Source: Phyllobates terribilis
Taxonomy: Eukaryota
DNA: 64,000 nucleotides
Direction of reading: 5' to 3'
NCBI RefSeq assembly: GCF_046119375.1
Contig: NW_027362767.1
Coordinates: forward strand, 426,932,001-426,996,000
A model generated the notes under the pieces. That model made no database searches. It was not told the DNA's origin and saw nothing but the letters and a program-made list of their open reading frames with translations. The first letter of the stretch is position 1. Every line of letters starts with the position of its first letter. Below are positions 4,736 through 63,392 of the stretch, in pieces. The translations under genes were made by a program, and so were the position numbers.

Positions 4736-6032
4736 GGGGTGCGCCATTTTGAACGTCAATCTGCCCCCTCCTCCACAAAACATTGTAAGCCCCCATAATG
4801 GTATAAATAAAAACATTACATTGCCACACAAAAAGCAAGCCCTCACATAACTTCATTAATGAAAAAATAAAAAAGTTGCAGGTCGTAGAAAATGGCAAAA
4901 CACAAAGCTATTTTTTCTTCTTGTGACAAATTTCTGAATTTTTTTTTAACCACTAAAATAAAAAACTAAGTTTGATATCGCAGTAATTGTACTGACCTGA
5001 TGAGCCGAGTTATCGGGTCATTTCTACCAGGCAGTGAACGCTATAAAAAAACAATGGCTGAATTGTGTGGGTTCTTTCACCATTATCACCCAAAAATGAA
5101 TGATGTCATTCACAGCTACAACTTGTCCCACAAAAAAAACCAAGCCCTAGTATAGCTATATGGATGGAAAAATAAAAAAAGTTATGGCTCTTGGAAGAAG
5201 GGGAGGAATAATCATAAGTGGTGATAGAGGAGCGCGTGACCAGACCTGTCCATCCGCCTCCGACAATAGAAAAGCAGCTTTCCCATGTGCAGCTTTATAA
5301 ATGGAGGAGGACAGACAGGTCTGGTCATGCGCTCCTCCATAAGCGGCAATCCTGAGATCAGGAGGAATTTGCAATCTGAGAAGAACCCGTGATCCTTGTA
5401 AATTAGTAAGTGTAACAACATCATCTGCCCAACATTTCTGTTAGAAAAAAAAGTAAAGCGGCCATCCCGTTTGCAAAGAGAGTACGTGCATGTTTGTTGT
5501 GTTGTACCAGTAAGGTGAAAAACCCCTGTCCCCCGCCCACAGTTTAAAATAAAAGATTTCTTCCCTCACCCTCCCCAGGTCCAGTGGTGAGTCTCTCCTG
5601 CTGCTCCAAGAGTTTGGATGCAGCGCTGCAAGCACTAACAATCAGTGGACTGAGCGGCCCGTGTCATCAACTCAGGCAGAGCCCCTGAGCTCACCTCCCT
5701 GACTGGCTGCAGCGTTGTCAATGAGACATCAGCACTGCAGACAATATAAGACACTGGGAGCAGTGGAGGAGAGTCAGAGCTGGACCCAGGGAGGGGGGAA
5801 AGCACAGTTTGTTTTTTAACCACACTGCAGCCGGCGAACGGGTTTTCAGAAACCGTAAAATCCCTTTAAGGCCGAATTCAAACTCAACAACCTCTTAAGC
5901 AATATCTAAGGCTGTCGAGTTTGGATTAGAAGACCGATGGCCGGTCCATACTTAACTGTGATATGTGATATATGGACGTATGAATTCGGCTTTATACTGG
6001 GTCCACACATTGCAGCAACATATAGTTATATA

Positions 6033-7659
6033 CAGTACAGACCAGAAGTTTGGACACACCTTCTCATTTAAAGATTTTTCCGTATTTTCATGACTTTAAA
6101 AATGGTACATTCACACTGAAGGCATCAAAACTATGAATTAACACATGTGGAATTATATCCTTAACAAAAAAGTGTGAAACTACTGAAAATATGTCTTATA
6201 TTCTAGGTTCTACAAAGTAGCCACCTTTTGCTTTGATCACTGCTTTGCACACTCTTGGCATTCTCTTGATGAGCTTCAAGAGGTAGTCACCGGAAATGGT
6301 CTTCCAACAATCTTGAAGGAGTTCCCAGAGATGCTTAGCACTTGTTGGCCCTTTTGCCTTCACTCTGCGGTCCAGCTCACCTCAAACCATCTCGATTGGG
6401 TTCAGGTCTGGTGACTGTGGAGGCCAGGTCATCTGGCGTAGCACCCCATCACTCTCCTTCTTGGTCAAATAGCCCTTACATAGCCTGGAGGTGTGTTTGG
6501 GGTCATTGTCCTGTTGAAAAATAAATGATGGTCCAACTAAACGCAAACCGGATGGAATAGCATGCTGCTGCAAGATGCTGTGGTAGCCATGCTGGTTCAG
6601 TATGCCTTCAATTTTGAATAAATCCCCAACAGTGTCACCAGCAAAGCACGCCCACACCATCACACCTCCTCCTCCATGCTTCACGGTGGGAACCAGGCAT
6701 GTAAAGTCCATCCGTTCACCTTTTCTGCGTCACACAAAGACACGGTGGTTGGAACCAAAGATCTCAAATTTGGACTCATCAGACCAAAGCACAGATTTCC
6801 ACTGGTCTAATGTCCATTCCTTGTGTTCTTTAGCCCAAACAAGTCTCTTCTGCTTGTTGCCTGTCCTTAGCAGTGGTTTACTAGCAGCTATTTTACCATG
6901 AAGGCCTGCTGCACAAAGTCTCCTCTTAACAGTTGTTGTAGAGATGTGTCTGTTGCTAGAACTCTGTGTGGCATTGACCTGGTCTCTAATCTGAGCTGCT
7001 GTTAACCTGCGATTTCTGAGGCTGGTGACTCGGATAAACATATCCTCAGAAGTAGAGGTGACTCTCGGTCTTCCTTTCCTGGGGCGGTCCTCATGTGAGC
7101 CAGTTTCTTTGTAGCGCTTGATGGTTTTTGCAACTGTACTTGAGGACACTTTCAAAGTTTTCCCAATTTTTCAGACTGACTGACCTTCATTTCTTAAGGT
7201 AATGAAGGTCACTCATTTTTCTTTACGTAGCTTTTTTCTTGCCATAATACAAATTCTAACAGTCTATTCAGTAGGACTATCAGCTGTGTATCCACCAGAC
7301 TTCTGCACAACACAACTGATGGTCCCAACCCCATTTATAAGGCAAGAAATCCCACTTATTAAACCTGACAGGTCACACCTGTGAAGTGAAAACCATTTCC
7401 GGTGACTACCTCTTGAAGCTCATCAAGAGAATGCCAAGAGTGTGCAAAGCAGTGATCAAAGCAAAAGGTGGCTACTTTGAAGAACCTAGAATATAATACA
7501 TATTTTCAGTTGTTTCACACTTTTTTGTTAAGTATATAATTCCACGTGTGTTAATTCATAGTTTTGATGCCTTCAGTGTGAATGTACAATTTTCAAAGTC
7601 ATGAAAATACGGAAAAATCTTTAAATGAGAAGGTGTGTCCAAACTTTTGGTCTGTAATG
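6033..7659 (-). mobile_element. Tc1/mariner DNA transposon, family A, defective
   Basis: TA on both sides; TIRs CAGTACAGACC(A/G)AAGTTTGGACACACC. Transposase fragments carry [14 protein letters not shown] and SPDLNPIE, with in-frame stops. Near-identical to 49313-50939. Confidence 0.92.
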
Positions 7660-7757: not shown

Positions 7758-8678
7758 ATGAGATAAACAAGGAATACGGAGTTTATTTGAGATTGATTAA
7801 CAAAATGTCAATATGACTTTATTAACACATACAACTCAACAATACATGTAAGTATAAAAAAGACATGGGCAGGAGGGAAATGGAGGATAACAGCAAGGGC
7901 GCAAACCATTACCAGGGAGATGTCTTGTATCACATGGTATAAGAGCTAAAAAAGACGCCACGTTCAGGTTTCATATAAGGCTGAGAAGCTTAGCATAACC
8001 CAGTGGTATATAAACAGTGTAATTGACATAATTCAGCCATAATGACAATAAAACCTGTAGCGGCAGTCACTATCAGCAAAGAGCCAAACGTTGTGTATGG
8101 ACAGCAACATCGCTTACCCTGGATAAGCGCAGCACCCAAAATACCGTGTGGATATATACCACTTCCCGACGCGCGTTTCGCGTGAAGTGTATACGGCTTT
8201 ATCAAGGGAAGATAAAGCGTTGATAAAGCCGTATACACTTCACGCGAAACGCATGTCGGGAAGCGGTATGTATCCACGTGGTATCTTGGGCTCTGCGCTC
8301 ATCTAGGGTAAGCGATGTTGCTGTCCATGCACAACGTTTGGCTGTCTCTTTGCTGATAGTGACCGCCGCTACAGGTTTTGTTGTTTTATTGTCATTATGA
8401 CTGAATTATGTCAATTACACTGTTTATAAACCACTGAGTTATGCTAAGCATCTCAGCCTTATATGAAACCTGAACGTGGCGTCGTTTTTAGCTCTTATAC
8501 TATGTGATACAAGACATCTCCCTGATAATGTTTGCGCCCTTGCTGCTATCCTCCATTTCCCTCCTACCCATGTCTTTTTTATACTTACATGTATTGTTGA
8601 ATTGTATGTGTTAATAAAGTCATATTGACATTTTTTTACTCAATCTCAAAAAAACTCTGTGTTCCTTGTTTATCTCAT
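7758..8678. repeat. About 920-bp palindrome (two arms of about 450 bp), possibly Penelope-like derived
   Basis: ATGAGATAAACAAGG at 7758 mirrors CCTTGTTTATCTCAT ending at 8678. The arms stay complementary up to a spacer of about 14 nt near 8206-8219. Confidence 0.85.
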
Positions 8679-9437
8679 ATAGTTATATAGGTTGAAAAAA
8701 AGACACCGGATCATCAAGGTCCACTTTTCTCCACCAGTTCTACATTCTCTAATGTTAGATTTGCCATTTGTTGTGAGGAAATCATCCAGCCCTTTTTTGA
8801 AAGTTGTTATAGTATCTGCCATCACTACCTCTTGTTGTCGGCAATACACAGTCTGACTGCTCTGACTGTAAAGAACCCTTTCCTGTTTAGGTGCCGGAAT
8901 CGCCTTTCTTCCCCCTGTAATGAGTGCCCCCTGGTTTAGTATGGTCTTTGGAAGGAATAAGTCATCGGCTAGTCCTTTGTACTGACCACACATATATTTA
9001 TACATGTAAATGAGAGATCCTCTGAGGCGTTGTTTTTCTAAGCTAAACAAGCCCAACTTTTCCAATCTCTCATCATATGAGAGGCCTCCATTCCTTGTAA
9101 TAATCTAGTTGCCACCTTTGAACTGACTCTCAACATCTGAATATTCTTTTTAAAATGTTGAGCCCAAAACTGGATCCCATATTTCAGATGTGGCCTCACC
9201 AGTGATTTATAAAGGGGTAACTACAATGGAATTGCAGGGTTTTATTTCTCTTTTTATACACCCTAAAATCTTGTTTGCTTTTGTGGCTGCTGCTTGACAT
9301 TGAGTACTGCTGCTGGGCTTACTTTTAACCAGAATACCCAAATCCTTCCCCTGTTCTGTAGTCCCGAGTATACACCCATTTAATGTATATGCAGCAATAG
9401 GATTACTCCGTCCTAGGTGCATTACTCTGCATTTATC
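8679..9437 (-). mobile_element. CR1 LINE 3' fragment
   Basis: ORF2 C-terminal peptides MHLGRSNP...GKDLGILV and LGLFSLEKQRLRGSLI; CR1-type tail TTTTTTCAACC on the minus strand; frameshifted. Confidence 0.88.
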
Positions 9438-10610
9438 AACAACGATGCGGGAAAGTTGCCGGCAATTTAAACTGGTCTAGAAATGTCCATCTGGCCGGAT
9501 GTTGTATAGTTGCTTTAGCATCTGTACCGTTCCGTGTGTAATTTTGATTCTTCGTGCCCCTTGTGACAGTATGGGCGCACAACCGCTGAAATGGAGTAAG
9601 AATGAGGCCCAGTAAACAGTAAGACATTGCCCCCGGCAACCACTCACTTTCAGTGTAGGCCTCAAAGTAAAAATAAAAGCCTGAATTAAATTGGTTGCTA
9701 TGGGAAACTGCTCTGTTTCACAACATTTTCGTAGCTTTTTTTTGTTTTTCTTTGTGCTATGGCCAGATGCTCCTTTAAATTCTTCATTCCCAGTGTTTTG
9801 GGATTTGTGGACATTTATAAGCTTTTCTAATTTTTCAGTCTCGTTTGTGTACAAATCAGCATCAGAGGCACTGATTCTTGTCCCTCAGTGATACATCCAT
9901 CATGGCGATGACAGGGGCACATAGCATCTGTGCTTGTGTAATGACCTGTGGTGATTGAAAGCCCCCTGCTGTAATAATGGCCATTAACCCTTTGGATGCT
10001 GCAATCTGTGCTAATCATGCCCCCCTATTGGGTATAAACAAACAGTGGGGGCTCTTTTTGGGGGGTTTGCTTTAATTTTGTCTTTAACCTTTTTGTGACT
10101 TTTCAGAGCAAGAAGTCGCATGTTTTGCTAAAATTACATAAAAAATTCCAGAATTGCAAAAAAAATTACTCCAGGGGGAACTAGAGTACATTAGCGCATA
10201 GAAAAATGTAACTAAAAAGTTGCAATTCATGAATCGACCACAAACATCTGGAAAATAAAAACCGCGCCCACAATGGTGAACATAAGAGAAAACAAACACA
10301 TATAATATACGTAAAAAAGACGGCAATTAAAAGAGAAATTTGGCGAAAACCACCAAAAACTTTGCAAAAATCTGAGGCAATGTAATAATGAACAGGCCCT
10401 TAGGCTGCATACAGAAGATTACAATCTAAACGCCATGTCAGGCTGGTATCTCACCTCCGGTATACACGGTCTAAGTACAGACCAACCGCGGGTCTCCTGA
10501 CCCAAACTCAATAGCTCTATAGTCATATATACAGGTGCATCTCACTAAATTAGAATATCATCAAAAAGTTAATTTATTTCAGTTCTTCAATACAAAAAGT
10601 GAAACTCCTA

Positions 10611-22545: not shown

Positions 22546-25500
22546 ATGGAAGAGAGAATGGAGCACGTGGAGGAGAAGCTTCGCGGAGGTCAGTAACGGG
22601 GGAGCAACAGAAGGGTTAATGTCTTTTGTAGATCGGCTGCGATCCTGGAGCAGAGACTGCGCATGGCGATGGGATGAAATCGCAAAAGGTGCAGCGAGTT
22701 CACGTCTTAGCAGGAATATGGCGACTACAGGAGCCGGGGAATCCCGTCAGCACCAGAGGCTCTCTGCTCATCACCGATCCTGAGAGCCGGCGCTCTGACG
22801 AGGCCATTGTGGACGGAGCAGCGGTCGTTCATGTGTAATACCGCTCCATTCATATGGATGGGCGCTTCAGAGCATCGGTTCTTGGTGCCCAGTGATCGGG
22901 AAGTAAACTTTCAGACTTGAGGATACCCCTTTAAATCCTTTGTTCAGCGCCACTTTCTTCCATCTACGGAGGTCAGTGGTGCTGGAGACGTCACTTTTGC
23001 ACAGCAAGGACGCATGCAGGATCAGCAGGTGTCACACTTCTGTCCTATTCATCAGAGGTGCACAGGGATGTGCAGAACCTCCCGATGCAGAGAAGGGACC
23101 GGATATCCCCTTTATGTGGTATTGAGTTCACAGGGGAGAAATCCTTTTTTTTAAGATAAATGTGATGGGTTGTTTGCATCATTATTCTCGTCAGCCGTCC
23201 GCAGGGTGATATCAGACAGATTTACTCTTTCATTTAATAATTACAATTTATGTTATTGATAAAAAAATCTCCTTTTTCAGAATCTGTAATTGTGAAGCCG
23301 GACATCGAATCCAAGATAAAAGAAGGGAAGCCGGTGATTATAACTATTCCTATAGATGAGGAGTGCAAGTCTTCAGGTGAGCAGCCAGATAGTCATGAAC
23401 ATAAAGGAGGCTTAAGATTTAGAGATCTGCAGATGAAGAACACATGGCTGGTGTAGCGCTGCAGCCCTGCCTGATATTTCCCACGTTTTGCACAGTGGTG
23501 ATCTCGGGCTGCCACCAGTGCGGAGAACTTCAGCCGCCTCATTCACTCACACAGCTCCGCGCAGCACCGTCTCGGGCAGCTGTGAATGTGACCTCTTCAT
23601 TGCCAGGATCACTGGGGTATCCAAGCTCTTCAGTGGAGTGAAGTGGGTGCCCACCTGTCTCAGTTACTTAGACTGCCCGCCCTGTATTAGCTGCAGTCGG
23701 GGCCACCTGTGATCACCCTGATATATAGGGACGTGGTCACACAGAGCCGCTCTATAGGTCTCCATTGATGGCCTGTATTACACTGTATTACTGTACATTT
23801 GTACAATCTCCTTCACTTTTCCTTCTTTTGGATCCGCAGATGTTTATGTGATTTCCGATCCTTCAGCAGTAAAGCAAGAACCCGAATGTGAGATTAACCC
23901 TTTATCACACAGCAAGTCACCGCCAGAAGGTTTGTTATATATGGCCATCCAGTCTCCTCTCTCCTACCAAGGCCTCATTCAGACCTATGTTTTTCATGTG
24001 CGTGTTTTTCACGTCTAGAACTCAGACCCATTATAATCAGCTGCTCACGTCTGTTTTTCTGTCGACTAAGTGTCCGCAAAAAAAAAAAAAATATATATAT
24101 ATATAATCAGAAACTTCTAATTTATATGTGAGTCATGGATCAGAATCGCCTGTACAGAGCTGATATAGAGTAGCGCGGTGTACGGGTCATGTGTGATCGG
24201 CAATGTCTGCCTTTGCAGAAGTCGTGCTCACCAGGCGGTCGTTTCTGAACCCAAGACATGTGAGGTCTCCTTAGACACTTTTGCGTGCGTCTCCATTGCT
24301 GGCCAGTATCCTCTACATGTAAATTAATCCTAAAAAGAAGTGTTACAGGACGCCATAATCCTCGTTACATACTACGGATGTTCAGTGGAGAACTGCACCG
24401 AATAAACAACGTATCTGATGTCACTTAGTGGAGGTCACAAGGAACAAGATCTCATACAACCTATACCGAGCAGCGGATTTCATCATCATCATCATCATCA
24501 TCTCGTAAATAAACCTTCACAGAGATTTCTTATCTCAGGTTTTCTAATATTCAGAACCACCAAGTAAATACTAGAAAATCTCAAAAAATTAGGATCCCCT
24601 CCAAGGCCTGATCAGTCAGTCTGCTCTTTTTATTGGAAGGCTTAATAAAAAAGAAAAAAACTAAAATTTCTCTTCGAGAATGTAATGATGCCACTGGCTG
24701 TGCCCGAGAGAAGCTGCCGGCTGAACGTAACCAGCCCTGACCTATAAATGGTCGCTTTGGCTTCAACAAACTTTGTAGAAATTAATAGTACAAGTGAATA
24801 TAAGAAACTTTGTAATAAATCTTATAAGAGAAACCTGCTTCTTTCTCTGCTTACGAGCCACTGCTTCCCCCTCTACCCGCGGTCTCCTGAACTCATCATT
24901 CACTCTATAAAATAGCCAAAAATGTGGTGAGAACAAAACCCGACCAGCTGCGTGTATAAGAGAGGAAGAGAGGTTAAAAAGCAGAGATTGTGTAGCTGCT
25001 TTCTAGTAAGTAATTTATCTCATTGCAGCACTGGATTCACAGCTACACTGCTCAGTAACGCTGTGTAATGTCCTCTGTGCTGCTCTCTTTCAAGTAATTT
25101 CTCTCCCCAGTGCTGGATTCGCAGCCACATTGCTTAGTAATGCTGTATAATGTCCTCCATGATGCTGCTGCTGCTTTTGGACATGTGCTTCATAAAGACA
25201 GTAGAGCAGGAATCCCTCATGTCTGTGTGTGGTGGGTATGGGAGACTTAAAGGGGTAATCCCATCTCCAAGATCCCATCCCTATATGTAGTAGGTATAAT
25301 AATAATAATATTAGTAAATATCTTCAATTAGAAATGTAGTATAGTTCTCCTGATTCGCTAGTGGTCGTAACCATGGATACCTAAGGTCCTGCACATGAGG
25401 AAAGATACTTAGCGAATCAGAAAAACTATACTACATTTCTAATTGGAGGTATTTGCTAATATTATTATTATTACTCCCACTACATATTGGAATAGGATCT

Positions 25501-38929: not shown

Positions 38930-42555
<3,626 letters not shown>

Positions 42556-45209: not shown

Positions 45210-48200
45210 TCAGTCGCCATTCTTCAGGAGTTTATAGTAAGCCCCCTCCTCGTTCTTTACCAGCTCCTTGTGATTTCCGCGTTCTACCACCCGACCTCCG
45301 TCCAGAACCAGAATCTGATCCGCATCTCGCACCGTGCGCAGCCGATGGGCGATGATCAGAAGTGAGAGGCCGGGGATATTCTGTACAGACTGCTGGATCT
45401 GCGGAGGAGACAGATGGTAATGACGGAGAGAAACAGATCACATCCCCCCAATACAGCCGGCGTCGCACCGCACCTCGTGCTCAGTCTCTACATCCAGACA
45501 ACTAGACGCTTCATCCAGGATAAGTAACTTAGGTTTCCGCGCGAGCGAGGGCGATGCGCTGCTTCTGCCCGGCCCCCATCTGAGCCCCGCTATCTCCAAC
45601 ATCTGTGGAAACAGGAAACTGCATTTCTGTATCAAATAATATAATAATAATCTGATTAAAAATGTCAGATGTAAAAATACTGCACAATATTGTATTAAAG
45701 GGGTAGAAGAGTTATGGTAAAAACCTGATGATTTTGGCCAAAAAGTTGGATCGGATAACCTAATGTACATGGGACCTCCAGATCCGAGACAACTTCCTAC
45801 CTCTAGATATGTGGCCAGTAATGTGAATGAAGTAATGTATGAAAAACAACATTTTTTTTCTCTTTATGGGTTCGTTAATTCTATATTTTGATGGACTGGA
45901 CTTTTATGAATGTGACAATGGCACCAGTGATTGACAGCAGCATGTAAATAGGTATACAGCAGTGATCGGAGGTAGCTCTGGTCGCTGCTGCTAACGGCAG
46001 ATGCCGGCTGTATATCGCAGCTCCAGAGCCTGCTCCATACATGGAGACCCAACGCAGCAAGTGCTGCTACGTCAGGAAGGTGTTTATATGCAATGTACCA
46101 TAGTAATGATAGTTTATTATAAACAGTAAAAAATAAAATGTAAAAAGTAAAAAAAAAATATATAAAAATCTTTTATCTCGGCTGTGGAATGTAATGCTGA
46201 TATCACTGACTTGTATCGTAGCCCTGGTCCAGGTCGCTGATAAAGTTTTCAGCCTTCGCGTTCCTTGCGGCCTCTGTCACTTGCTCGTTGCTTTTGCTGT
46301 TGAGTCCGTAACTAATGTTGTCTTTTATTGTTCCAGCAAATAAAACAGGATCTTGGGCGACCAGCGCCACCTAGAGGGAACATTATCAGTATATTGTTTG
46401 CAGCCACTTACAGTTAAAAATATCTCATTAACATACTTAAAGAGTAGGGATGAGGAGACCCGTGGAAGTTCGGGTTCTGGTACCCGACCCAAACTTTATA
46501 CCAAAGTTTGGTTTGGGTACCAGAACTGTACCCAAACTTGAACCAGAACCTGAACCCCATTGAAAACAATGGGGCCCAAACTTTTGAGTGGGCAAATTCT
46601 CTCCCTCTCCTTCTCTCTCACTCTCCAGACTTCCCCCGGAACTCTGAACATTGCAACAGACTTCCGGGTGAAGTCCATGTTCGAAGTTTAGCACCGGACT
46701 TCTAAGTTCGGGTTCGCTCATCTCTATTCAAGAGTAACTAAACTTTTTTGTTTTTTTAATTTCGTTATTGGTCAATTTATGATTTTTTGTAAATACTCCA
46801 TTATCTTATTTTGCTTCCTTCTGACTTTATCACCACGCTGAAAGTGCTTGTTTGTCTGCCTAGTTCTTGCAGTCTTGGTAACTGTTTTGTACTGCAGGCC
46901 TAGCAAAGATCCGTTCTCTGCTCCTTTATAGTCAGTATAATTCCTGTCTGAACATAGATGGGGGCAGCAGAGACGCTCACACAGGAGAATGGATCTTTGC
47001 TGAACCTACAGGTCAAATCAGCTTCCAAGACTGCAAGAACTAGGCAGACAAGACAGCACCTTCAGCGTGGTGATAAAGACAGAAGGAAGCAAAATAAAGT
47101 AATGGAGTAGATGAAAAAAATTCATAACTTTACAAAGACTGATCAATGATTAAATAAAAAAATAGTTTAGTTACTTTATTATTAAAGGGGATGTCCAGAA
47201 CTATGAAATTGATGATTTTTCCTTGGGACAGATCATCAATATGCGATTGACATCCCGCACCACCACCAAGCTGTTTGTCAAGCATAAAATGTTCAGAGCT
47301 GGAACAGCACAGCTCCACACACCGTGTTATGGCCGTTCACAGGTACTGCAGCTCAGATCATATTCACTTTATTGGCAGCCGAGGACGGCCATAACACATT
47401 GTACCTAGCTGTTCCGGCTCCGTACACAATGTACATCCTGTGGCTACGAGACCTACGAAGCAGGTGACACCCAGCACCGCACCGATCCGATACTGGTGAC
47501 GATGGTGGTAATGGAGCTAAGCTTCTCCTGTAGGACAATTGTAATGAATGAGCCCCAGAATTAAAGGAGCATTAAACATACAACATAGTATGAATGAAGC
47601 ATATACTAATAAGTAACATCATCCACATGTAAAAGTATGAAGGTTTCTAAATTTTCCATGAAATAAGTGGTATAAAGCAGGTGATCCTGGGAGTGGACAA
47701 TATTCTGGATTTCCGGTCACATTGAGGAACATAGCGTGAAACATTAATATATAACAATCGATGGCCGTCAGCTGCTGAAGGTTCATGTGCGCTCGATGCT
47801 CCGGATATCTGGTCCTACCTTACTGTGCAGATACTGATGGTCGTACTCGGCCAGAGGTCTCCCATCCAGAAGGATTGCCCCGCTCTGGGGCTCGTAGAAT
47901 CGCTCCAGAAGGGACACACAGGTCGTCTTACCCCCTCCTGAGAGTCCAACAAGAGCGGTGACGCTTCCCGGGGGAAGACTGAAGGATAAGTCCTGTGGGT
48001 CATAAAATAAATGATAGGGGATGAATATAATCAAGAGACAATGAAAGAGAGGACATGTATGGAAAGTATGTGAGGTGTCAAAGTGACGTATAAAATGAGA
48101 AGACTCAGAACATCAGAAAGGGGCCCGGATCTCAGATTCTGGCGGAGCTGTGTGTGAGGGGGCGACTGACTGCTCATGTGAAAGCTAAGCCGGCCCCTTT

Positions 48201-51200
48201 GTCTAACAAAGCCAACTGGCTGTTGAAATGCGCAGTCAGCTAGCCGCCTTCATACATGGCTCATTATGGGGGCCCACCTAATACTATTTCTATTCAACAT
48301 GAGCTCTATCGGTACACGCCACATTAACCGGCCAATATGATGGGAATGCCGACTCTTTATAGTGAGTGGGATCATTGGGCTCAGCTCAGTCGTAGTTTTT
48401 GGCTCTTCATTTGAAGGAGTTTTCCACCACTATTATACGACCTCAGGAGAGATCATCAATATCATATCGGTGTGCGTCCGACACTCGGCAGTCGCACCAG
48501 TCAGAAGTTATTTGCACCGGCAGCGGACGGAAGTAATCCTTGAATCGAGTTGCAATGTGTAGCAGCCGCTACTGGATACTGCAGAGCAGCCGCTAGTCAA
48601 AAGTGGCCGCTGCAGTGAATAACAGATGAGTGGTGTAGGGGTCCTGTGTGATGGACCCCCACCGATCTGATGTTAATAACCTCTCCTAAGGACACTGGTA
48701 AGAGGTCTTGTGCTAAAAGAGTCATTAGTTAGGCCTGAATACACATCAGAGAAAATTTGGAGGACTCCACAGGGACATCAGTCTGTCCAATGTGTATGGA
48801 GGCCACATAATGGCAGATGTCAGGGAAGAGATGGATTGAGTGTGTACCTGTATGGGGGGGCCAGGAGGGATAGCTGTCGTTATGTAAGGTGTAGAAAATA
48901 CAGGGTGTTGTGTGGTTTTGTGTTGTGCACACTCACCTGCACAGCCGGGGTATCTGGACGGGATGGATAATAAAATGTAACGTTCTTGAACTCAAATTCA
49001 CCATGTAAATCGTTTGGGCAAAGTGATCCCGATGTGGAGATCTGAGGCTCCCGATCCAGGTACTGAAAGATCTTGGAGGCGACTCCTGCGGAATGGGTTA
49101 TCTCACTGAGCATGTGAAAAAGGCTCTGAAAAGCAAAGGAGGAAAAAAGGTCAAGACCAGTGAAACGTGACAGTGCTCCATACCATGGGTATCCTTGCCA
49201 GTCTTGTGTACTAATGTTCAGCCCCCATTTACTTCAATAGGACCAGGGTCGCAGTACCCGAGAATGGCCACTACACAGTGTATGGAGCTGCTTATATACG
49301 TATATATACATACCGTACAGACCAAAAGTTTGGACACACCTTCTCATTTAAAGATTTTTCTGTATTTTCATGACTATGAAAATTGTACATTCACACTGAA
49401 GGCATCAAAACTATGAATTAACACATGTGGAATTATATACTTAACAAAAAAGTGTGAAACAACTGAAAATATGTCTTATATTCTAGGTTCTTCAAAGTAG
49501 CCACCTTTTGCTTTGATGACTGCTTTGCACACTCTTGGCATTCTCTTGATGAGCTTCAAGAGGTAGTCACCAGAAATGGTTTTCACTTCACAGGTGTGCC
49601 CTGTCAGGTTTAATAAGTGGGATTTCTTGCCTTATAAATGGGGTTGGGACCATCAGTTGTGTTGTGCAGAAGTCTGGTGGATACACAGCTGATAGTCCTA
49701 CTGAATAGACTGTTAGAATTTGTATTATGGCAAAAAAAAAGCAGCTAAGTAAAGAAAAATGAGTGGCCATCATTACTTTAAGAAATGAAGGTCAGTCAGT
49801 CCGAAAAATTGGGCAAACTTTGAAAGTGTCCCCAAGTGCAGTTGCAAAAACCATCAAGCGCTACAAAGCAACTGGCTCACTTGAGGACCGCCCCAGGAAA
49901 GGAAGACCAAGAGTCACCTCTGCTTCTGAGGATAAGTTTATCCGAGTCACCAGCCTCAGAAATCGCAGGTTAACAGTAGCTCAGATTAGAGACCAGGTCA
50001 ATGCCACACAGAGTTCTAGCAGCAGACACATCTCTTCAACAACTGTTAAGAGGAGACTTTGTGCAGCAGGCCTTCATGGTAAAATAGCTGCTAGGAAACC
50101 ACTGCTAAGGACAGGCAACAAGCAGAAGAGACTTGTTTTGGCTAAAGAACACAAGGAATGGACATTAAACCAGTGGAAATCTGTGCTTTGGTCTGATGAG
50201 TCCAAATTTGAGATCTTTGGTTCCAACCACCGTGTTTTTGAGCGACGCAGAAAAGGTGAACGGATGGACTCTACATGCCTGGTTCCCACCGTGAAGCATG
50301 GAGGAGGAGGTGTGATGGTGTGGGGGTGCTTTGCTGGTGACACTGTTGGGGATTTATTTAAAATTGAAGGCATACTGCACCAGCATGGCTACCACAGCAT
50401 CTTGCAGCGGCATGCTATTCCATCCGGTTTGCGTTTAGTTGGACCATCATTTATTTTTCAACAGGACAATGACCCCAAACACACCTCCAGGCTGTGTAAG
50501 GGCTATTTGACCAAGGAGGAGAGTGATGGGGTGCTACGCCAGATGACCTGGCCACCACAGTCACCAGACCTGAACCCAATCGAGATGGTTTGGGGTGAGC
50601 TGGACCGCAGAGTGAAGGCAAAAGGGCCAACAAGTGCTAAGCATCTCTGGGATCTCCTTCAAGATTGTTGGAAGACCATTTCCGGTGACTACCTCTTGAA
50701 GCTCATCAAGAGAATGCCAAGAGTGTGCAAAGCAGTCATCAAAGCAAAAGGTGGCTATTTTGAAGAACCTAGAATATAAGACATATTTTCAGTTGTTTTA
50801 CAATTTTTTGTTAAGTATATAATTCCATATGTGTTAATTCATAGTTTTGATGCCTTCAGTGTGAATGTACAATTTTCATAGTCATGAAAATACAGAAAAA
50901 TCTTTAAATGAGGTGTGTCCAAACTTTTGGTCTGTACTGTATATATATAGATAGCCTTTGGAAAACATGCACCATTGTGATTTCTTTGGCCTCGTACCCG
51001 TGTGTAGTCGCTAGACTCCATCTGGTAGATGATGAAGGACACCATCGCCCCGGTGGTCATCTCTCCTTCAAGGATTAATGTGTGTCCATAGCATAACATG
51101 GAAACCTGCGACCCCAGATTGATGATCTGAAGGGAAGAAAAGCGTCTTAATCATCAGGGCACACAGATTATCACTACTATCAACACAGATATCAGTCACA

Positions 51201-54414: not shown

Positions 54415-57322
54415 TAGGATATATATTAAAATCAATAACAATAAAGAACACAAACATTCTAAATTCTAATCTCAAGCCTTTTTGAGAACATGATAGCGAA
54501 TATCATCTTACAGAGTGTTAGGCACAATGATTGCCCCCATAGCAGTGCCCATAGGACATGTGTGTATACAAGGTTCTGTGTCTCACAAGTTACAGTATCG
54601 TACTTTACCAGTTTTAGTGGTTTCAAAGAAGGCAATGTCCTGTCTAATGAACGCACGGAAAAGGAGACGTCGCAGACGTCTGGTGAGACGATACATGGAG
54701 AATATGAAGAGTCCTCCTCTGCAGCCTGCAGAAATAGTGCTAAATAAAGAGAAAGGTAAGTCTCAATATCCAGTATTACATCTGTATGAAAACACATGTA
54801 GAAATATTTATAGAATGAATGGCCACTTTATTACTGACACCCATCTAGTAGTGTGTTAGACCTTCTGCCTTCAGCAATTCCTGGTGGCAGAGATCCCACT
54901 TGTTGATGTGATCGTTCTGCAGGAATTTCGGCCATGTGGATTGGATCACTAGATGGAGGTACTGACAGGCTGTCAACGGCCCATTGTACTTTGTCCCAGA
55001 GATGCTCTACAGAATTAAGATCTGGGAAATTTAACATCCAGGAAACAAAGAAAAACTCACTGCAATATTTCTGTAAGCAACCCAAGACTATATGGCTGAT
55101 GTGGCTTGGGGCATTGTCCTTCTGCCATAGAGGAAACAGCTGCCACGAAGAGATGATCGGACACAATACTGAAGTAAGTCCTACTGTTCAAATGTCTATC
55201 CACAGGTATCAGTGGCAAATGCCAAGAAAACCTTTCCCTACCATTACTGTACCTCCACCAGCCTGACAGGAAGGCGTTATCCATCCACAGGTATCAGGGC
55301 ATCATGGTGCACCAAGAAAACCTTCCCCCACCATTACTCCACCTCAATCTGCCTGACAGGAAGCGGTCATTAATCCACAAGCATCAGTCAAATCTACATG
55401 TACTAAAAAAACCTTTGTCCATCAATACTCCACCTCAATAAGTCTGACTGAAAGGGGTTGTTCACCAAAAGGTATCAGAGGAGCCAGAGTGCGCCAAGAA
55501 AACCTTCCTCCACCATTATTCACCTCCATCAGCCTGACAGGGTGTGTTCATCCATCTACATGTATCAATGGCGCTATGGTGGACCATGAAAACCTTCTGA
55601 ACATTATTACTTCACCTCAATCACCCTGACAGGAAGAGGTCTTCATTTCAGCTCTAATCATGAAAGGACTGGTGTTTCTAATGAAGCGGCCATTCAGAGT
55701 ATATTGTATTTATGTTCAGTACAGCAATAGTAAATGTCTGTCCCAGGAATAACTCGGCAAGAATTTACCACGATGGGAACATGCATAAAACGTAGAGCTG
55801 AGCAGGAAGGATTGCTCTTCCCTGGTGTGGCGTCCAGTCTGGTCCTCCACGGCAGTCTTCACATCTGTGCCCGACATCCTGGGTACTTATTGCACTTTCA
55901 AGCACTTTCTGAGTGGCGTGATGCACGACATGACGTCGCAGGATTTAGCAGGCGACAGTGGTACCCAAATAGCTGGGCACAGAAGTGAAGACTGCAACAT
56001 AGGACTGGACTGGGTGGCCGCGCAAATCCTTCTGCCCAACACTACAAAAAATTAATACTCACAAAAAAAGTGCTTATATCAACCATTAAGAGTCAAGTCT
56101 CCACAGGAAAAATGGCAGCTGAAATTTGCCTGCTTGCTGACCTTGAATTTCAGAGTTCTCTAGTTTAATCATGAGGCCCAAGAAGTCTACATGTGCTCAC
56201 TTTGCCATATGTCTCACCCACCTGGAGATGGTCAACACAGCCATATAAAGTATAGCCTCCAGGAACTCGGCCTCCTTGTAATTGTTGGACAGGTTGTCAA
56301 TCATCCGACCCATGTAGTAAGGAACCCACATTTCAACTGTAATAAACAATAAGATACTTACTTTCCTCCATAGAAGAACAGAACTTTCCATATAACTTTT
56401 AGTCTAAACAACATATTCAACCTGTCGAAATGTTCTGACTATTTCTAACCGTTATCAGTTTCCCTCTTTACACAACTACCTCTTCACATATAAATTAGCG
56501 TTGCGTGATCGGACAACCAAAGTTCCCTTCACACGAGCCAGTAATTTGCTCGTAAGAACGCTCATTCCCGATCATCTTTCTGTGTACACATGCCATCGAT
56601 CGGCTGAAGAACGAGCAAAATGAACGAGCCTGTATTACAGAACATAGAAGAACCCATGTTTCTCTATTATTAAGGTGGAGATCAGTTACTTTCTCTTGTA
56701 AGACAAATGGCTGCAGCAGGAGCCTCTCCCCTCTGCTCTGTAAAAATTTCCACTCCCTGCCTGTTGTAGAAATTTTGCAGAAAATCAAGTTATATCTCAT
56801 AAAAAGAAAAACAGTTTTGCAAAACTTACATGTCAAAGCCAGAAAAAGGAAAACAAAAGCCGAGGACAGGTACGGCCAATCCCGCTTCGAAAGTTTGACA
56901 AGTCTGATAAAATTCTTCCTGTCTGTCTGTTCTCGTTCGTCTCTGCCGGAAGTTTCTTTTTTGTTAGTAGGAGGTAAAATCAGATCCCAGACCAGACATG
57001 ACAATGGCAGAGGCATATGATAGAGCAGAGAGCTGGAGAAAACAGAGGATAACTCGGGAGACTGAGAGGTGAGAAAGAACCTGAGGGTCTGGTATAAAGG
57101 AGGCGCGAAGCCGAGGGTTAGAGCGAAGGGCAAGCGGGAGGAGATCCAGCGTGGACGGGGCAGGAGGTTGGATATCGCTACAAGTATTGGAGCTTTAATA
57201 AGGTAGACCAGCCACACAGCGAGAAAGAGATCTACAGGATAATATCTGACAAGGCTGGAAATTATGTACGTGAGTGATGAGTCCAGCAAGACGAGAAGTG
57301 GAAGAAAACATAAGGAAATCAT
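45210..57322 (-). CDS. TAP2: TAP2 (ABCB3) peptide transporter subunit, 11 coding exons, frameshifted in exon 10
   Basis: Exons 56830-57322, 56222-56336, 54609-54739, 53144-53349, 51920-52117, 50998-51126, 48937-49125, 47819-47992, 46211-46370, 45474-45602 and 45210-45398, all GT-AG. TAP2-type motifs GCRGG, RALYLL, Walker A GLSGGGKT, degenerate signature MGAGQ, Walker B LILDE, IAHRL. The exon sum of 2113 nt is not a multiple of 3. Confidence 0.93.
46445..46726. mobile_element. hAT-like MITE in TAP2 intron 8
   Basis: TAGGGATGAG ... CTCATCTCTA; 8-bp flanks TTAAAGAG and TTCAAGAG. Confidence 0.75.
49313..50939 (+). mobile_element. Tc1 family A copy with near-intact transposase, in TAP2 intron 6
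   Basis: TA flanks and long TIRs. ATG at 49727, a single in-frame TGA at 49760-49762, then 338 open codons with a DD34E triad ending FEEPRI*. Confidence 0.93.
53643..53722. repeat. 11-bp tandem repeat (ACCAAACTCTG, about 7 units) in TAP2 intron 3
   Basis: Direct reading. Confidence 0.85.
54349..54415. repeat. (GATA)n microsatellite in TAP2 intron 3
   Basis: About 16 units with one interruption. Confidence 0.95.
54790..55640 (-). mobile_element. Old Tc1 transposase relic with degenerate tandem duplications of about 90-bp
   Basis: WQKDNAPSH, FPDLNSVEHLWD and GGGTVMVGKGF remnants; about five diverged copies of CCAAGAAAACCTT...CCATTACT...GCCTGACAGG at 55190-55640. Confidence 0.65.
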
Positions 57323-60300
57323 TGTGAAGGCTGAAGAGTAACACTGAGACCTCGACGGAAACCTACAAAGAGAAAGGTCACAAGTTAGAGGCCAAATGTA
57401 CAGTAAACTCTACTACAACTCACAGGATCAGCACAACAACAGAAAGTCCGAACCAAGGTTGTAACTCTTGGAAAACATATATGCAGACCTAAGAAGTTTG
57501 TCCAGTGATAAAAAAAAATGTAAGGGGGAAAACTCACCCTCACCGATCCACGGCAGGGCCCGTTTCGAATCATCCTGAGTCTTTGTAGGTCTTTACTCGT
57601 TTCATCCCATCTCCAGTAGTAGGGGCCAGAAAAGTCAAAGTTACAACTGACCCCTTTAAAAAATAAATTTTAGTCCCTGGAAAATCCCTGTAAATGGGTC
57701 TAAGCGCAGGATAAAGTATTGACAGAGACCCAGATTCCATCACTGGTCATTTTCTAGAGGTCTTTCAACCATGGTGCTGCAGCCTACACCCCGAACCCAT
57801 GATGATGGTGAGCGGTGGTCCACCCCATCTCCTGACAGGCAGCGTTCTCCAGTTTCAAGGACCATGCTCAGAGCAGTACACCAAGCAGCTGCAGATAACT
57901 CTGGTCAGGAGACCCAGCGGTCAGGCCAAGTATTCCTCTCCGAGCACGGTCTATGTTTCACAGACCGGACGTATAAAAGCAGCATTATACACAGTATAAG
58001 GTAAAAGCTGTCAATCAGCCGCAGCAGGATGGTGACATCCACAGCTCAGGAATATCGATGACTAAGTAACCCAAAGCTGGTATCGGGGTCCCCGTCACTA
58101 CCCTTGGATAGGGCAGCAGAACCCGCATGAAAATTTCCTTCAAAGCAATTTTCTCACCTTTTTAGGCTCATTCACATCAGAATTAGTCACAGAAATGTAC
58201 AGGACTTCTCTATATACTCAAATTGTGTTTGTAAACTTTCTCGCTCTCGCATGTGATACAGAAGCAACCTAAGATTTTTAGTTTCAGAAAAATCCTCACC
58301 GTGTAAAACCTATCCTAAAGCCCAATCTCGCAATAGTTCTCAGAAGAAACCGCCCTCATCAGTACTGGCGGCCATGAGAGGCACATTTACAAATCGACTC
58401 TGTAAATCCTGATAAGTTTTCTGGCTGGAATCCAGCATCAAATCTCAGGACGCAGATACAACTGCACGGACGCTAACGCCGGCATCAGAAACAGATGGGA
58501 GAACAGAGCTTTGAAACTCTAAAAATGAGTGTAGGAGATTTCTATAAAGCCCCTCGACGCGGCCCAATAATCGGCCAAAGGGCATTAATTGGAGCTCATT
58601 ATGGGCATAAATCGTCCTTCACTTTCTCATTAAATTGTTTTAAGCCCCATTCTGCACTTTTATTCTTAAAAGGCGCCCTGTCACTAGATCAGAAGTAGCC
58701 GGTTTTTGTTCTTATTTTATCTCCACTTCTACCTTCAGTATTCCACGGTTTGTTTGTTTTTAAATCTGCAACATGGTTCCCGAGATATGGGCCTCCTTAT
58801 TTAGTGCTGATGATTTTTATAGTCTTTAAAAGGGGAGTGGCTCACAGGTTCCTCTGGGGCGTGTCTTTAGGCTGTTCTACATAATTAGTATGTAAACCAC
58901 ACCCCCTTAGTAAAGACCATAAAAATTAGCACTTAATAAAATGGCTCATATCTCTGGAACCGTATGGCGGATTTAAATATGGAAAAAAGATGGATTACTC
59001 AGGAGAGTAGTAGGAATAAAATAAGAAAAAAAAACTAAACACTTTTCACCCTGTGATGGCACCCATGTAAAAAAAATAACAAAAATTGTTAAAAAATTTG
59101 GGGATAATAACTTTAAGCCCACAGCCTCACATGGGCATATTATAGGGTTCACATTGTAGTGTTTGATTTCATAGAGATGTATTACAGTTGAATTCAGTAC
59201 GAAAACCCTCCAGAAAAAAACATGGCTGCTTTATCGGATGCCATTGTGTGGATGGTTGTGGCAAGACTTAGCTATATACTTTAGAGTAGAGTAACGCTGT
59301 GTGTGATTTCATCCTTTAGGAACCTCTATGGGCCAATAGCTCGGTACATACTATGCCCAGCAGAGGCTGTTCGGCAGCACACAGACGCTATGCAGCACGC
59401 TACACTCTCCGTGTAACAGCGTTCGCCTGTCCGCTATCACATGTTCACGGCTGCTTAACATACTTGACAACAGTTATAGTTATTAAAGGATCATCCTAAA
59501 AGCTGGATCACAAAAATGTCAGAGTGAGTGAAAATGTGCATTACAATGGGGGATTTACGATAACCCCCCGGCGCTTATATATTTAGCGTATTGTGCTGTA
59601 TATGCATAACACAGGGGTGGCATAAGCGCAAAAGGAGTTTCCCATCATCACCAGTCGTTCAACCTCTCAGATGCTGCAACCTACACAGTCTGCTGCATCT
59701 AAGCGGTTAGATAGATGGACAATGGTCAACTAGATACCTTAAACACGCCGCTGTGATGATGGCGACCGTATCATTCATTGTCCTTAAGAGATCTCACAGA
59801 TCTGGTGTATAGGTGAGCCTGTAAGGGGGTGACAGGGGCTGCCATGTGTCTCTCCCTCTCTAAACAGTGTTTATACAAGGTGTACGGTTTTATTACATTT
59901 TGGTGACTATATTAATATATGAATCTGCATTGTTTTCATAGGTACTAATGTACACAGTTAATGTATTGTGATTAGTGTATAATGTTATTTATATATGGTG
60001 TATAGGGAAAGCATAGGACCCTGGCTGGGGTATAGTTAGTGATGGAGCCATTGGGGCTGAGGCAGTGGTGGCCTATTACTATATAGAGGATGAGGCAGAG
60101 TGTAGAGAATAGGACGTGCAGTGCACGCTATTACTGGGTGAATACCGCAGCTCATTGCTGAAGGGAGAAGTTTGCCCAGCGACCGGCGGAGACGGTTGCT
60201 GATTGGTCCAGTTAAAAAAAGGAGGAGGAGTCTGGGCCAGAGGGGAGCAACGGTTATTCCTGTCAGGAATCAGTCCTGTCAGAGCAGCAGTTGCTGTTGG

Positions 60301-60753
60301 ACGGGAGAATCAGCTGCCAGGTTATTATTATCACATATTAAACTATGTGGAATGACGTTTACTTTTCACTAAGATGGCGGCGTCTGGGGAAAATGAGAAA
60401 AAAGCTCCGGCTCTGGGAAGAAGGCGAGGAAAAGATGAAAGCTGGGAACACTAAACATGGCGTCTGATCGCCGGGGGGGTAGGTTATAAAGTGGAGGACT
60501 GATGGTACGAGGATGGCACAGGTTAGGAAGGGGTTAAAGAGTGAGATCGCATCTCTGGAAGACGCACAAAGGACCCTGCGACTGCCTGAATATTATACAG
60601 CGAGACGCAGGAACATCAGGAAATATACAAAAATAAATGAAAATAGATTTATATATATTGCTTACTTTTTTTTCATAATTGTTTATATATAAAGATATAT
60701 AGATATATGTGTCTGTAAATATTGTGCTGTGGAATATGTTGCTACTATATAAA

Positions 60754-60801
<48 letters not shown>

Positions 60802-60972
60802 AAGAGTTGTAAAAAAAAGTAAATAATATATATAAATACATTATATTTATTTTTGTATATTTTCCAATGTTCCAGCGTATCGCCGTGTTTGTTTTATTTA
60901 TTTTTTATTTCTTATTTAGTTGCTTTTTTACTATTACTTTTTGGATTATTGTAACTCACTATATATTTAGTA

Positions 60973-61020
<48 letters not shown>

Positions 61021-61379
61021 CAAGTAAATAGTCTGTATATATAGATAGATAAAATATTATTAATATATTAATAGTCATTATTGTGTATATATGTATAATA
61101 ACTATTAATATATCAATAATATTTTCTCTCTATATATACACTATTTACTTGTTTTTTTTCTCTATTTTTTTAATTAATTAATTAGTATTTTTAATTTCCC
61201 TTTTTCCTTTTTTTTTTTTTTTTCTTTGCAAATAGTAATGGAAAAAAAATAAATAGATAATCATACTAAAAAAGCCCCTCCAGCTCTGGGCAGTAAGGGG
61301 TTAAGAGGCTAAACTCTTGTGGTTATTTCGCCTCCATCGATCGTGACACAGGTAGGTGATGAGTGAATGACACAGGGTG

Positions 61380-61760
61380 ACCCTGCTGGGAGTTGTAGTG
61401 CTCACTGTCTGTACTCACTGCGCCCTCTCCGCGGAGTTTCTGCGCCCGAATCTTCAGCGCTGTCGCCCGGATGCTGCGGCTGAGCCGGGGTCCTGCGGGT
61501 GTCTGCGCCCGGGTGTCGGTGTCTGGGTGTTCGGGTGTCGGGGCTCGGGCTGTGGGGCCGCCCCGTGCTATTATTGTATTACATTAGCCGCAGCTTTCAC
61601 TTTCGATCTCCTGTTGATGCCGCGATTCCGGGAACAGCAGCCGGGGGTTTCTGTGTCCTGACAGCAGATCACATCGGATCAGAGGCGGAGAGGATCGCAC
61701 CGAGCGAGCGAGCGCCGGACATCAGCCTGGTGCCGGTTCACACTGTCTGGTGAGGCCGCA
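61380..61760. promoter_or_regulatory. Shared TAP2/TAP1 CpG-island promoter with ISRE/IRF-E, GAS and ZNF143-type motifs
   Basis: CTTTCACTTTCG (61594-61605), TTCCGGGAA (61626-61634) and GCTGGGAGTTGTAGT (61385-61399). Minus-strand donor GTGAGT at 61418-61413 and plus-strand donor GTGAGG at 61750. Confidence 0.78.
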
Positions 61761-61924
61761 TTTATGCATTTTATTTATTTTTTTGCTGTTTTTCTTTGCA
61801 CCATTTTGGGGTCCTTGAAACTTTCCCATCTCTTTATTCCATTTTTGTGGGGGGGAGTTGATCTGGTCGGTTATTATATTAATACTTTATTAGGAGGAGC
61901 TGTGGCGGTGTCAGATGTATTTGT

Positions 61925-62290
61925 GGTCCCAGAGGTCACATTGGTGGTCCCAGCGGTCACATTGGTGGTCCCAGAGGTCACGTTGGTGGTCTCAGCGGTC
62001 ACATTGGTGGTCTCAGAGGTCACATTGGTAGTCTCAGCGGTCACATTGGTGGTCCCAGAGGTCACATTGGTGGTCCCAGAGGTCATGTTGATGGTCCCAG
62101 TGATCACGTGGTGGTCCCAGCGATCACGTGGTGGTCCCAGTGGTCACATTGGTGGTCCCAGAGGTTACGTTGGTGGTCCCAGCAGTCATGTTGGTGGTCC
62201 CAGTGGTCACATTAGTGCTCTCAGCCGTCAAGTTGGTTTTCACCAGCGGTCATGTTGGTGGTCCCAGCAGTCACCTTGGTGGTCCTTAGC
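61925..62290. repeat. 21-bp minisatellite in predicted TAP1 intron 1
   Basis: Unit GGTCACATTGGTGGTCCCAG(A/C), about 17 units, degenerating rightwards. Confidence 0.9.
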
Positions 62291-62899
62291 CACCAGTTCA
62301 GTGACCTCCTGGCATCCACGGCTCCTCTGATTGATCGGCCGGAGATGTCATGACATGACGCCAAGCTCACACCAGAAAATGCGTCATGCCGGCAGGTAGT
62401 AGGAGGTACACAGGACTCGGGTCTGGTGGCCAAGGACCACCAATGTGACTGCTAGGACTGGGGTCCTGCAAATCTTTTTGCTAAAGCTCTATTTTTTTAC
62501 GTTTTGTGACATGAATGTTGATTTTTTTCATTTTTTTTTAATATTTTAGCTATTCTTTTTACATCTCTTTTTAGTACTTGTACCTGTGATCACTCAATCA
62601 CCTCAATAATCGCCTCATATGTATAATGCATCAAATGCCCTTTTTATCCCCTTTTTGTGACGTACTATCACACAGTCCTGTGACGTAATAGCGTGTCTGT
62701 GGGCTGTATTATACAGCCGGCACTGGTTTTGGACATTAAACCCCTTAGATTCTGCAGTAAGAGCTGACCGCAGCATCTAGGCGGTGAGTCAGAAGGAGAC
62801 GGCTCCCTCTGTCCCTCCATGACACCTTCGTTAACTATATTCCACTATAGTGACATAATCACAGCCTTATTTGTGCTATTTTCTCTCTGTTATCAGGCG

Positions 62900-63392
62900 A
62901 TGCATCCCGTCTACTCATTGTGCTGCCTCTTCGGGGTGGACTATGCCACTCTACACCTGCTGACCCTTCTTTTGCCCCCAAACCTCCTCCAGACATGGGC
63001 ACTGGGCCTGGTACGACTGGTCGTCTTGATGCTTGGCGTTCGTGCAGTGGGCCGAATATCAAAACTGCCCCCCTGGTTACAGGGGAATCCATTGCTGCTG
63101 TCCTCTGCCGTCCTCACCCTGCTGGTGCCATGTTGTGCGACCATCACTGCTGTTCTGTTACCACGGGCCAGCGCCGGCCTCCTGCACCGATCGGGGCACG
63201 CGGACCTGTTCTTCTACTCGTACCTGATCACGGTGACGTCCACCCTCGTCTGGCACCAGCTCTTCCTGGAGGATGAAGACGAGGAGGACGAGGCGGAGTC
63301 GTCGGCCTCAGTGTGGAGGCTACTCGACCTCCTGAGGCCCTATGGCTGGCGGTTCCTGTGGGTGTCCGTGTTTCTGGTGCTGTCTTCATGGA
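62900..63392 (+). CDS. TAP1: TAP1 (ABCB2) first coding exon; the rest lies beyond the window
   Basis: Acceptor TTATCAG at 62896, ATG at 62900, hydrophobic TMD0, acidic linker, then SVWRLLDLLRPYGWRFLWVSVFLVLSSW and a phase-1 donor GTGAGT. The LVLSSW end matches TAP1 (VVLSSL-GEM) better than TAP2 or ABCB9. Confidence 0.75.

Follow-up and report, generated by a model that had tools for sequence, protein, structure and literature searches.

The window analysed here, the whole 64-kb stretch of Phyllobates terribilis DNA, holds two genes of antigen processing that are transcribed away from each other: a minus-strand gene, whose exons extend down to about 45.2 kb, and a plus-strand gene, of which the first coding exon alone lies within the window. 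The first coding exon of the minus-strand gene (its exon 2) occupies 56830-57362, with the ATG at 57322; that of the plus-strand gene (also exon 2) occupies 62897-63392, with the ATG at 62900, and the window ends within the intron that follows, intron 2. The two start codons are 5578 bases apart, which bears out the preliminary description of this DNA, where divergent ATGs separated by 5.6 kb had been noted. Measured from ATG to donor, the two coding stretches (56830-57322 and 62900-63392) are each exactly 493 bases long, or 164 codons plus one base, ending in the same phase; in a region where the two proteins can barely be aligned, this equality is a trace of the common origin of TAP1 and TAP2.

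The identity of the two genes was established from exons searched one by one, with no joined protein model. Both exons with a start codon align with the N-terminal portion of TIGR00958, the TAP family model of NCBIfam, which is general and cannot tell TAP1 from TAP2. For the minus-strand gene, the bit score of one transmembrane exon is 57.6 with human TAP2 and 24.2 with TAP1, another reaches 52 bits with human TAP2, TAP1 not being among the matches listed, and the exons of this gene are closer to turtle TAP2 than to turtle TAP1; in addition, its first coding exon is 44% identical to a TAP2-like exon 1 of Xenopus tropicalis. By these similarities the minus-strand gene is identified as TAP2 (ABCB3). 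A signature-like MGAGQKQR and a Walker B motif with LILDEAS were recognized by eye in the nucleotide-binding domain of the TAP2 open reading frames, and are presumably counterparts of the human TAP2 motifs. The TAP2 reading frame is not intact: one exon, 45438-45770, carries the signature motif and the Walker B motif in separate frames, and the allele of the reference animal appears from its sequence to be frameshifted near 45.5 kb, a feature of which the promoter finding described below is independent. The plus-strand exon is 100% identical, over all of its 164 residues, to the RefSeq TAP1 (antigen peptide transporter 1) of Phyllobates terribilis, which was retrieved by a word search with the X. 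laevis TAP1b protein, and its best HMMER matches are proteins of Engystomops, Xenopus and Ascaphus named TAP1 by their sources. Two of these relatives, P0001 and P0006, score 392 and 756 bits, respectively, against human TAP1 versus 233 and 460 against TAP2, and the plus-strand gene is identified on this basis as TAP1 (ABCB2). The same N-terminal exon found no match in the PDB and none in a word-based protein search, because its TMD0 is too divergent and the word search is limited to proteins of similar length. Both gene names thus stand as the preliminary description had given them.

A search by tblastx with turtle proteasome regions revealed no PSMB-like coding sequence between the two ATGs, where the absence of PSMB8 had been claimed, nor elsewhere in the 64-kb window. 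Matches of the turtle PSMB8 region at 8852-9446 were considered as a possible proteasome gene and rejected; they are read as a shared repeat, since turtle TAP2 introns match the same place. Two long plus-strand open reading frames with features of Tc1/mariner-like transposases, as judged by eye, are found at 49763-50779 and 41207-42156, in TAP2 introns or downstream.

Between the two coding exons lies a CpG-rich block of 331 bp, 61419-61749, delimited by two splice donors that point in opposite directions. Its GC content is 0.64 and its CpG observed/expected ratio 1.01, the values for the entire window being 0.45 and 0.59. On the minus strand, the donor of a noncoding exon 1 of TAP2 occupies 61417-61418, with 61419 as the last exon base, and is followed by an intron 1 that runs from 61418 down to 57363; on the plus strand, the donor of a noncoding exon 1 of TAP1 occupies 61750-61751, with 61749 as the last exon base, and its intron 1 spans 61750-62896. 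The first introns are 4.06 kb (TAP2) and 1.15 kb (TAP1) long, and the divergent first exons of these two antigen-processing genes are less than 1 kb apart, their donors being separated by 331 bp. The donors are those that had been proposed to bracket a CpG island, with GT dinucleotides at 61418/61417 and 61750/61751.

Near the centre of the block lie the consensus IRF site and the GAS that had been described there as 20 bp apart; both are present, at a distance of 21 bases. The candidate ISRE / IRF site, GAAAGTGAAAG, is found on the minus strand at 61594-61604 and is the sole exact copy within the 64-kb window, and the candidate GAS (STAT site), TTCCGGGAA, is at 61626-61634. The combined pattern TTTCNNTTTC-N15-30-TTCNNNGAA has one match in the 64-kb window, where shuffled sequences give an expectation of 0.03. 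Next to the GAS, on the plus strand at 61640-61652, a GCCGGGG motif is joined to a kappaB-like decamer, GGGGGTTTCT (61643-61652), which has one mismatch to the consensus GGGRNNYYCC. A motif scan of 61280-61800 yielded a single GC box, CCGCCC (minus strand, 61558-61563), and neither a TATA box nor a CCAAT box.

Between the TAP2 donor and the GC box, 61490-61560 consists of repeated GGGTGTC/GGGCT units with at least six plus-strand G-runs, from which a G-quadruplex is possible. On the TAP2 side the block adjoins a very AT-rich tract (60600-61230, GC 0.13-0.20) with two (TA)n arrays, which RNA contigs skip, and on the TAP1 side, just past the block within TAP1 intron 1, a minisatellite with a 21-bp unit occupies 61919-62285 (17.5 copies, 83% matches).

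Of the public runs of P. terribilis, eight include portions of the stretch, and transcript evidence was obtained by placing four of these, which belong to two studies, on 57300-63299. These runs are stored as contigs and labelled 'RNA?', and the canonical spliced joints in the contigs identify them as cDNA. In all four runs, and hence in both studies, spliced contigs carry the TAP2 junction 61419>57362, which reads CT..AC on the plus strand and is therefore GT..AG for a minus-strand transcript, as well as the TAP1 junction 61749>62897, with GT..AG ends. The second had been predicted exactly; the first had been predicted to lead from 61419 to acceptors at 57575 and 57362, of which the latter is used in 4/4 runs and the former was not seen. 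Both first exons hence lie, as had been proposed, in one block around the ISRE and GAS. The leaders were checked in a script by joining exon 1 to the beginning of exon 2 (43 bases for TAP2, 6 for TAP1). That of TAP2 is noncoding: a stop at 61456 is in frame, and no upstream ATG is; in that of TAP1 the one ATG within or downstream of the estimated start range, at 61617, is out of frame, and an in-frame ATG at 61471 lies upstream of that range and reaches a stop inside the block.

The position of the starts within the block can be approached through the same contigs, which cover it entirely in the four runs, and reads tile it with no gap of 31 bases, so that the first exons overlap or abut, or else minor read-through transcripts fill the space between them. 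In three runs a single contig spans the TAP2 mRNA, the whole block and the TAP1 mRNA (for instance record 17 of run X5, 6887 nt), which is an assembly merger of two unstranded transcript sets. The graph of run X2 splits at a minor acceptor, 61638, located between the GAS and the kappaB-like site, and its two parts differ in mean depth: 10.9 for 61417-61663 together with the TAP2 exons, and 107.5 for 61634-61748 together with the TAP1 junction, the latter being near the depth of 100.5 of the TAP1 mRNA body. From these mean contig depths, which are crude, the main TAP1 start is estimated at about 61563-61640. The ISRE and GAS may consequently sit at the TAP1 start or within a few tens of bases of it, and probably fall inside the TAP2 leader rather than cleanly upstream of both genes; the coverage of the whole block by contigs itself leaves room for the motifs to coincide with, or follow, the start of one gene or of both.

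Plus-strand transcripts also make use of two minor upstream exons, both of which fall inside TAP2 intron 1. The donor of the first (61234-61351) joins 61351 to 62897 in run X1 and to 61638 in run X2, with GT..AG ends, at low depth and in one run each. The second (60292-60478) joins 60478 to 62897 in one run, at a depth of 10.6, and consists of repeat-like sequence; contigs at 59.8-60.6 kb carry many variant letters, which suggests a repeat family, and this upstream start may derive from a repeat. The block is therefore not the only promoter of TAP1. Elsewhere in TAP2 intron 1, at 58700-59100, contig depth is in the hundreds, with inverted joints and loose ends running into poly(A), and this segment looks like an abundantly expressed short interspersed repeat.

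The arrangement of ISRE, GAS and GCCGGGG/kappaB-like elements recurs upstream of TAP1 in other tetrapods, in the form TTTCACTTTC-N21/22-TTCNNNGAA followed by the third element: it is found in X. tropicalis, in the frog Nanorana parkeri and in a sea turtle, the olive ridley. When the three comparison loci were searched with the structured pattern TTTCACTTTC-N19-24-TTCNNNGAA, exactly one match was returned from each, in the same orientation relative to TAP1, against an estimated chance rate of about 3e-5 per 10-kb flank. From the start of the ISRE core TTTCACTTTC to the GAS TTCNNNGAA there are 31, 31, 32 and 31 bases in the four species. GCCGGGG is invariant in a three-way alignment, and kappaB consensus decamers occur at the homologous place in X. 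tropicalis, Nanorana and the turtle. The sequence around the cassette is unalignable between species, and blastn of the whole intergenic regions of the frog against those of Xenopus and the turtle gives short matches only; the case for conservation rests on the pattern search and not on BLAST, because the ISRE ties in score with chance 13-mers. Taken together, the order, orientation and spacing of these elements mark the cassette, at the level of sequence, as a phylogenetic footprint across the amphibian-amniote split.

In X. tropicalis, the cassette is carried by the unplaced contig AAMC04000021.1, where the first coding exons of a TAP2-like gene (minus strand, 1180-701) and of a TAP1-like gene (plus strand, 10001-10510) stand head-to-head, TAP2(-)/TAP1(+), as in Phyllobates. 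Its elements, TTTCACTTTCGCTTTC (5149-5164), TTCTGGGAA (5180) and GGGGAATCCC (5193), lie between these two exons and are flanked by donor-like sites on the minus strand (exon end 4853) and on the plus strand (exon end 5311). Another TAP1 of this species, encoded on a 147-Mb contig, has 85% identity with X. laevis TAP1b across residues 1-420. In a large search, the TAP1-like protein of AAMC04000021.1 was clustered apart from TAP1b at the 50% identity level; AAMC04000021.1 may represent an alternative MHC haplotype of an old allelic lineage. The Nanorana cassette, 3 kb upstream of the TAP1 ATG, consists of TTTCACTTTC at 6956 and TTCCCGGAA at 6988, then GCCGGGGACTTCC, with a minus-strand donor-like site 218 bases to its left. 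In the turtle, TTTCACTTTC at 9556 and TTCCCAGAA at 9587, then GCCGGGGGCTTCCC, lie 445 bases upstream of the TAP1 ATG. The turtle genes follow the order PSMB(-), TAP1(+), PSMB(+), TAP2(+), which is the amniote layout, and the divergent partner of TAP1 is here a proteasome gene. Separate ISRE-like motifs are found in the turtle locus at 23931 and 29340, where the downstream proteasome gene and TAP2 begin, and it seems from these motifs that each gene in the amniote layout has an element of its own. Tandem repeats unrelated to those of Phyllobates lie beside the same cassette in X. tropicalis (approximately 4948-5075) and in the turtle (approximately 8043-8372).

The human promoter shared by TAP1 and LMP2 (PSMB9) is the best-characterized system with which the frog block can be compared. 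It is a TATA-less, GC-box-rich region of 593 bp with multiple start sites, where transcription both ways depends on an NF-kappaB site together with an Sp1 GC box, proximal to TAP1 (Wright et al. 1995, PMC2191963), and its ICS-2 and GAS sites are bound by IRF1 and STAT1 (PMC6504791); the preliminary description was thus right in naming a bidirectional promoter with IRF and GAS sites common to human TAP1 and PSMB9. Like it, the frog block is short, TATA-less and GC-rich, lies between divergent antigen-processing genes, and carries, as far as its letters can tell, an IRF site and a GAS next to TAP1, in addition to a GC box; its kappaB-like decamer, with one mismatch to the consensus, may be a counterpart of the NF-kappaB site. 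The turtle PSMB/TAP1 locus, with the same cassette, links the frog and amniote versions, and the best-supported reading of these likenesses is that the cassette and the ICS-2/GAS/NF-kappaB core of the TAP1/PSMB9 promoter in amniotes are orthologous. The differences lie elsewhere: the partner of TAP1 in the frog is TAP2 and not PSMB9; neither frog first exon is coding, and introns of 1.1 and 4.1 kb separate these exons from the ATGs, which are consequently 5.6 kb apart as compared with 593 bp in human; there is one GC box in place of many; and the transcripts from the two sides may overlap in the frog, whereas the human ones do not. On this reading, an old TAP1 promoter would be shared with TAP2 in the frog and with a proteasome gene in mammals. 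The interpretation given in the preliminary description largely holds: its structural part is borne out, and its single interferon switch for both subunits would follow by analogy.

These observations make it likely that the two genes share 61419-61749 as their main promoter and as the site of their first exons, a TATA-less bidirectional promoter of the CpG-island type from which TAP2 would be transcribed leftwards and TAP1 rightwards, and whose cassette would co-induce both. Each gene would begin with a short noncoding exon in the block and then splice across a long intron 1 to the exon that bears its ATG. By analogy with the human promoter, IRF1/ISGF3 and STAT1, perhaps with NF-kappaB, would bind the near-central cassette in response to interferon, and their binding would raise transcription in both directions, so that the cassette would act on TAP2 as well as on TAP1 and the two genes would be induced together.

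The cassette could instead serve TAP1 exclusively, exon 1 of TAP2 being the product of generic divergent initiation at a CpG island and the level and induction of TAP2 being set elsewhere. The cassette indeed tracks TAP1 whatever its partner, be it TAP2 in frogs or a proteasome gene in the turtle, the TAP1 side in run X2 is about tenfold deeper than the contig with the TAP2 junction, and the ISRE-like motifs at the starts of the downstream turtle genes suggest that the proteasome gene and TAP2 each have an element of their own there. Against this, the donor of TAP2 exon 1 is just 176 bases from the ISRE, a minus-strand donor at 200-300 bases from the ISRE is retained in X. tropicalis and Nanorana, the TAP1-proximal elements of the human promoter drive both directions (PMC2191963), and contig depths do not permit the ranking of genes; this explanation is accordingly judged unlikely, if clearly the strongest of the alternatives. 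A second one would have TAP2 transcribed mainly from a promoter of its own near its ATG, at 57.4-60.5 kb, with the exon in the block as a minor upstream leader. Unspliced contigs at 57483-57619 and 57675-57940, with a depth of about 2, and an ISRE with one mismatch at 58616-58626 speak in its favour, but the contig of the TAP2 mRNA enters exon 2 through 61419>57362 in 4/4 runs and no other junction into 57362 or 57575 occurs in the four runs, so that a TAP2 start in that interval, the outcome named beforehand as fatal to a shared promoter, did not materialize and the explanation is very improbable. That a housekeeping-type CpG island should match the ISRE and GAS by chance, these being short motifs picked by eye after the sequence was read, is scarcely credible in view of the 0.03 matches expected in the window and of the same cassette order, orientation and spacing in three other tetrapods despite unalignable flanks.

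The shared promoter of TAP1 and TAP2, as favoured here, raises the question of the age of the layout, which had been called older or convergent on the strength of its likeness to birds. The order Tap2-Tap1-Psmb8-Psmb9-MHCI is given for a caecilian, a pipid and toads by He et al. 2023, where a Tap2-Tap1 scaffold of the dendrobatid Oophaga pumilio is listed apart from MHCI-Psmb9-Psmb8 (PMC10210626). TAP2 beside TAP1 with no PSMB between them is thus the common order in amphibians; orientation, first exons and promoter elements are not treated in the text of that paper, and Phyllobates is not among the species in the part of its table considered here (PMC10210626). Since the Tap2-Tap1 order is already published for many amphibians, the layout itself is not new (PMC10210626); what is added is the head-to-head orientation, observed here in a dendrobatid and a pipid. 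In the gene tables of Bufo bufo, Lithobates pipiens and Microcaecilia, the 10 kb upstream of TAP1 contain no called gene, so that spacing as compact as that of Phyllobates is not universal; the available Ascaphus contig begins at the TAP1 coding exon.

The layout was compared among Phyllobates, X. tropicalis, the sterlet and the turtle. In the sterlet, a gene for a 730-residue ABC transporter on the minus strand, with its ATG at 1544, stands head-to-head with TAP1, whose ATG is at 10001. Exon 1 of this minus-strand gene scores 47.8 and 39.7 bits against frog TAP2 exon 1, at most 35 against any TAP1 N-terminus and 18 against its own neighbour, and in the PDB its first exon finds a marginal match to ABCB9 only; it is a probable TAP2, identified through the weak similarity of its N-terminal exon alone. 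An ISRE core, TTTCACTTTC, is present in the sterlet locus at 1711-1720, 167 bases upstream of the probable TAP2's start codon and 8.3 kb from that of TAP1, with no GAS near it.

Birds offer a further case. The chicken MHC is not known to contain PSMB8 or PSMB9. Chicken TAP1 and TAP2 are adjacent and of opposite transcriptional orientation (PMC10514180), and since the deletion in chicken BF1 ends in the 3'UTR of TAP1, the 5' ends of the TAP genes face each other (PMC10514180), which upholds the head-to-head arrangement that had been stated for this species. As in the chicken BF-BL pair, TAP1 and TAP2 of the frog are adjacent, with facing 5' ends and no gene between them; unlike the frog pair, that of chicken is flanked by two class I genes. 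The TAP orientation flips between bird species (PMC10514180). Of the two options left by the earlier inference, older or convergent, the data lean to the former, because the head-to-head layout is common to Xenopus and probably to sturgeon, although this leaning depends on one weakly identified outgroup gene. It can be proposed, tentatively and with somewhat less than even confidence, that the ISRE-GAS-kappaB cassette is a promoter core of TAP1 at least as old as tetrapods, that its original divergent partner was TAP2, so that a single interferon switch served both subunits, as it would in anurans and probably in sturgeon, and that a later rearrangement put PSMB9 in that place on the same cassette in amniotes. 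If TAP2 was the ancestral partner, the head-to-head TAP pair of birds would be a retained or re-created ancestral state.

No paper on the promoter of frog TAP1 and TAP2 came up in the literature search, which did not extend to Ohta et al. 2006 on the Xenopus MHC. In kind, the finding holds little surprise, given that the promoter of mammals and the gene order of amphibians were both known before; what is new is the pairing of an ancient TAP1 cassette, whose interferon function would follow by analogy, with TAP2 instead of PSMB9. For annotation, it means that each of the frog's TAP genes begins with a noncoding exon a long way from its ATG. The position of the cassette opposite a proteasome gene in the turtle offers a testable account of the origin of the human TAP1/PSMB9 promoter, and the cassette could serve as a dated regulatory landmark when rearrangements of the MHC class I region are reconstructed. 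TAP1 and TAP2 together form the peptide pump that supplies MHC class I, and function only as a heterodimer; in non-mammals, the TAP genes co-evolve with the class I gene in tight haplotypes. If the present reading is true, a single conserved interferon-responsive promoter would serve both subunits and provide a built-in means of stoichiometric co-induction, and the sharing of this promoter would be a further reason for the TAP pair to stay together.
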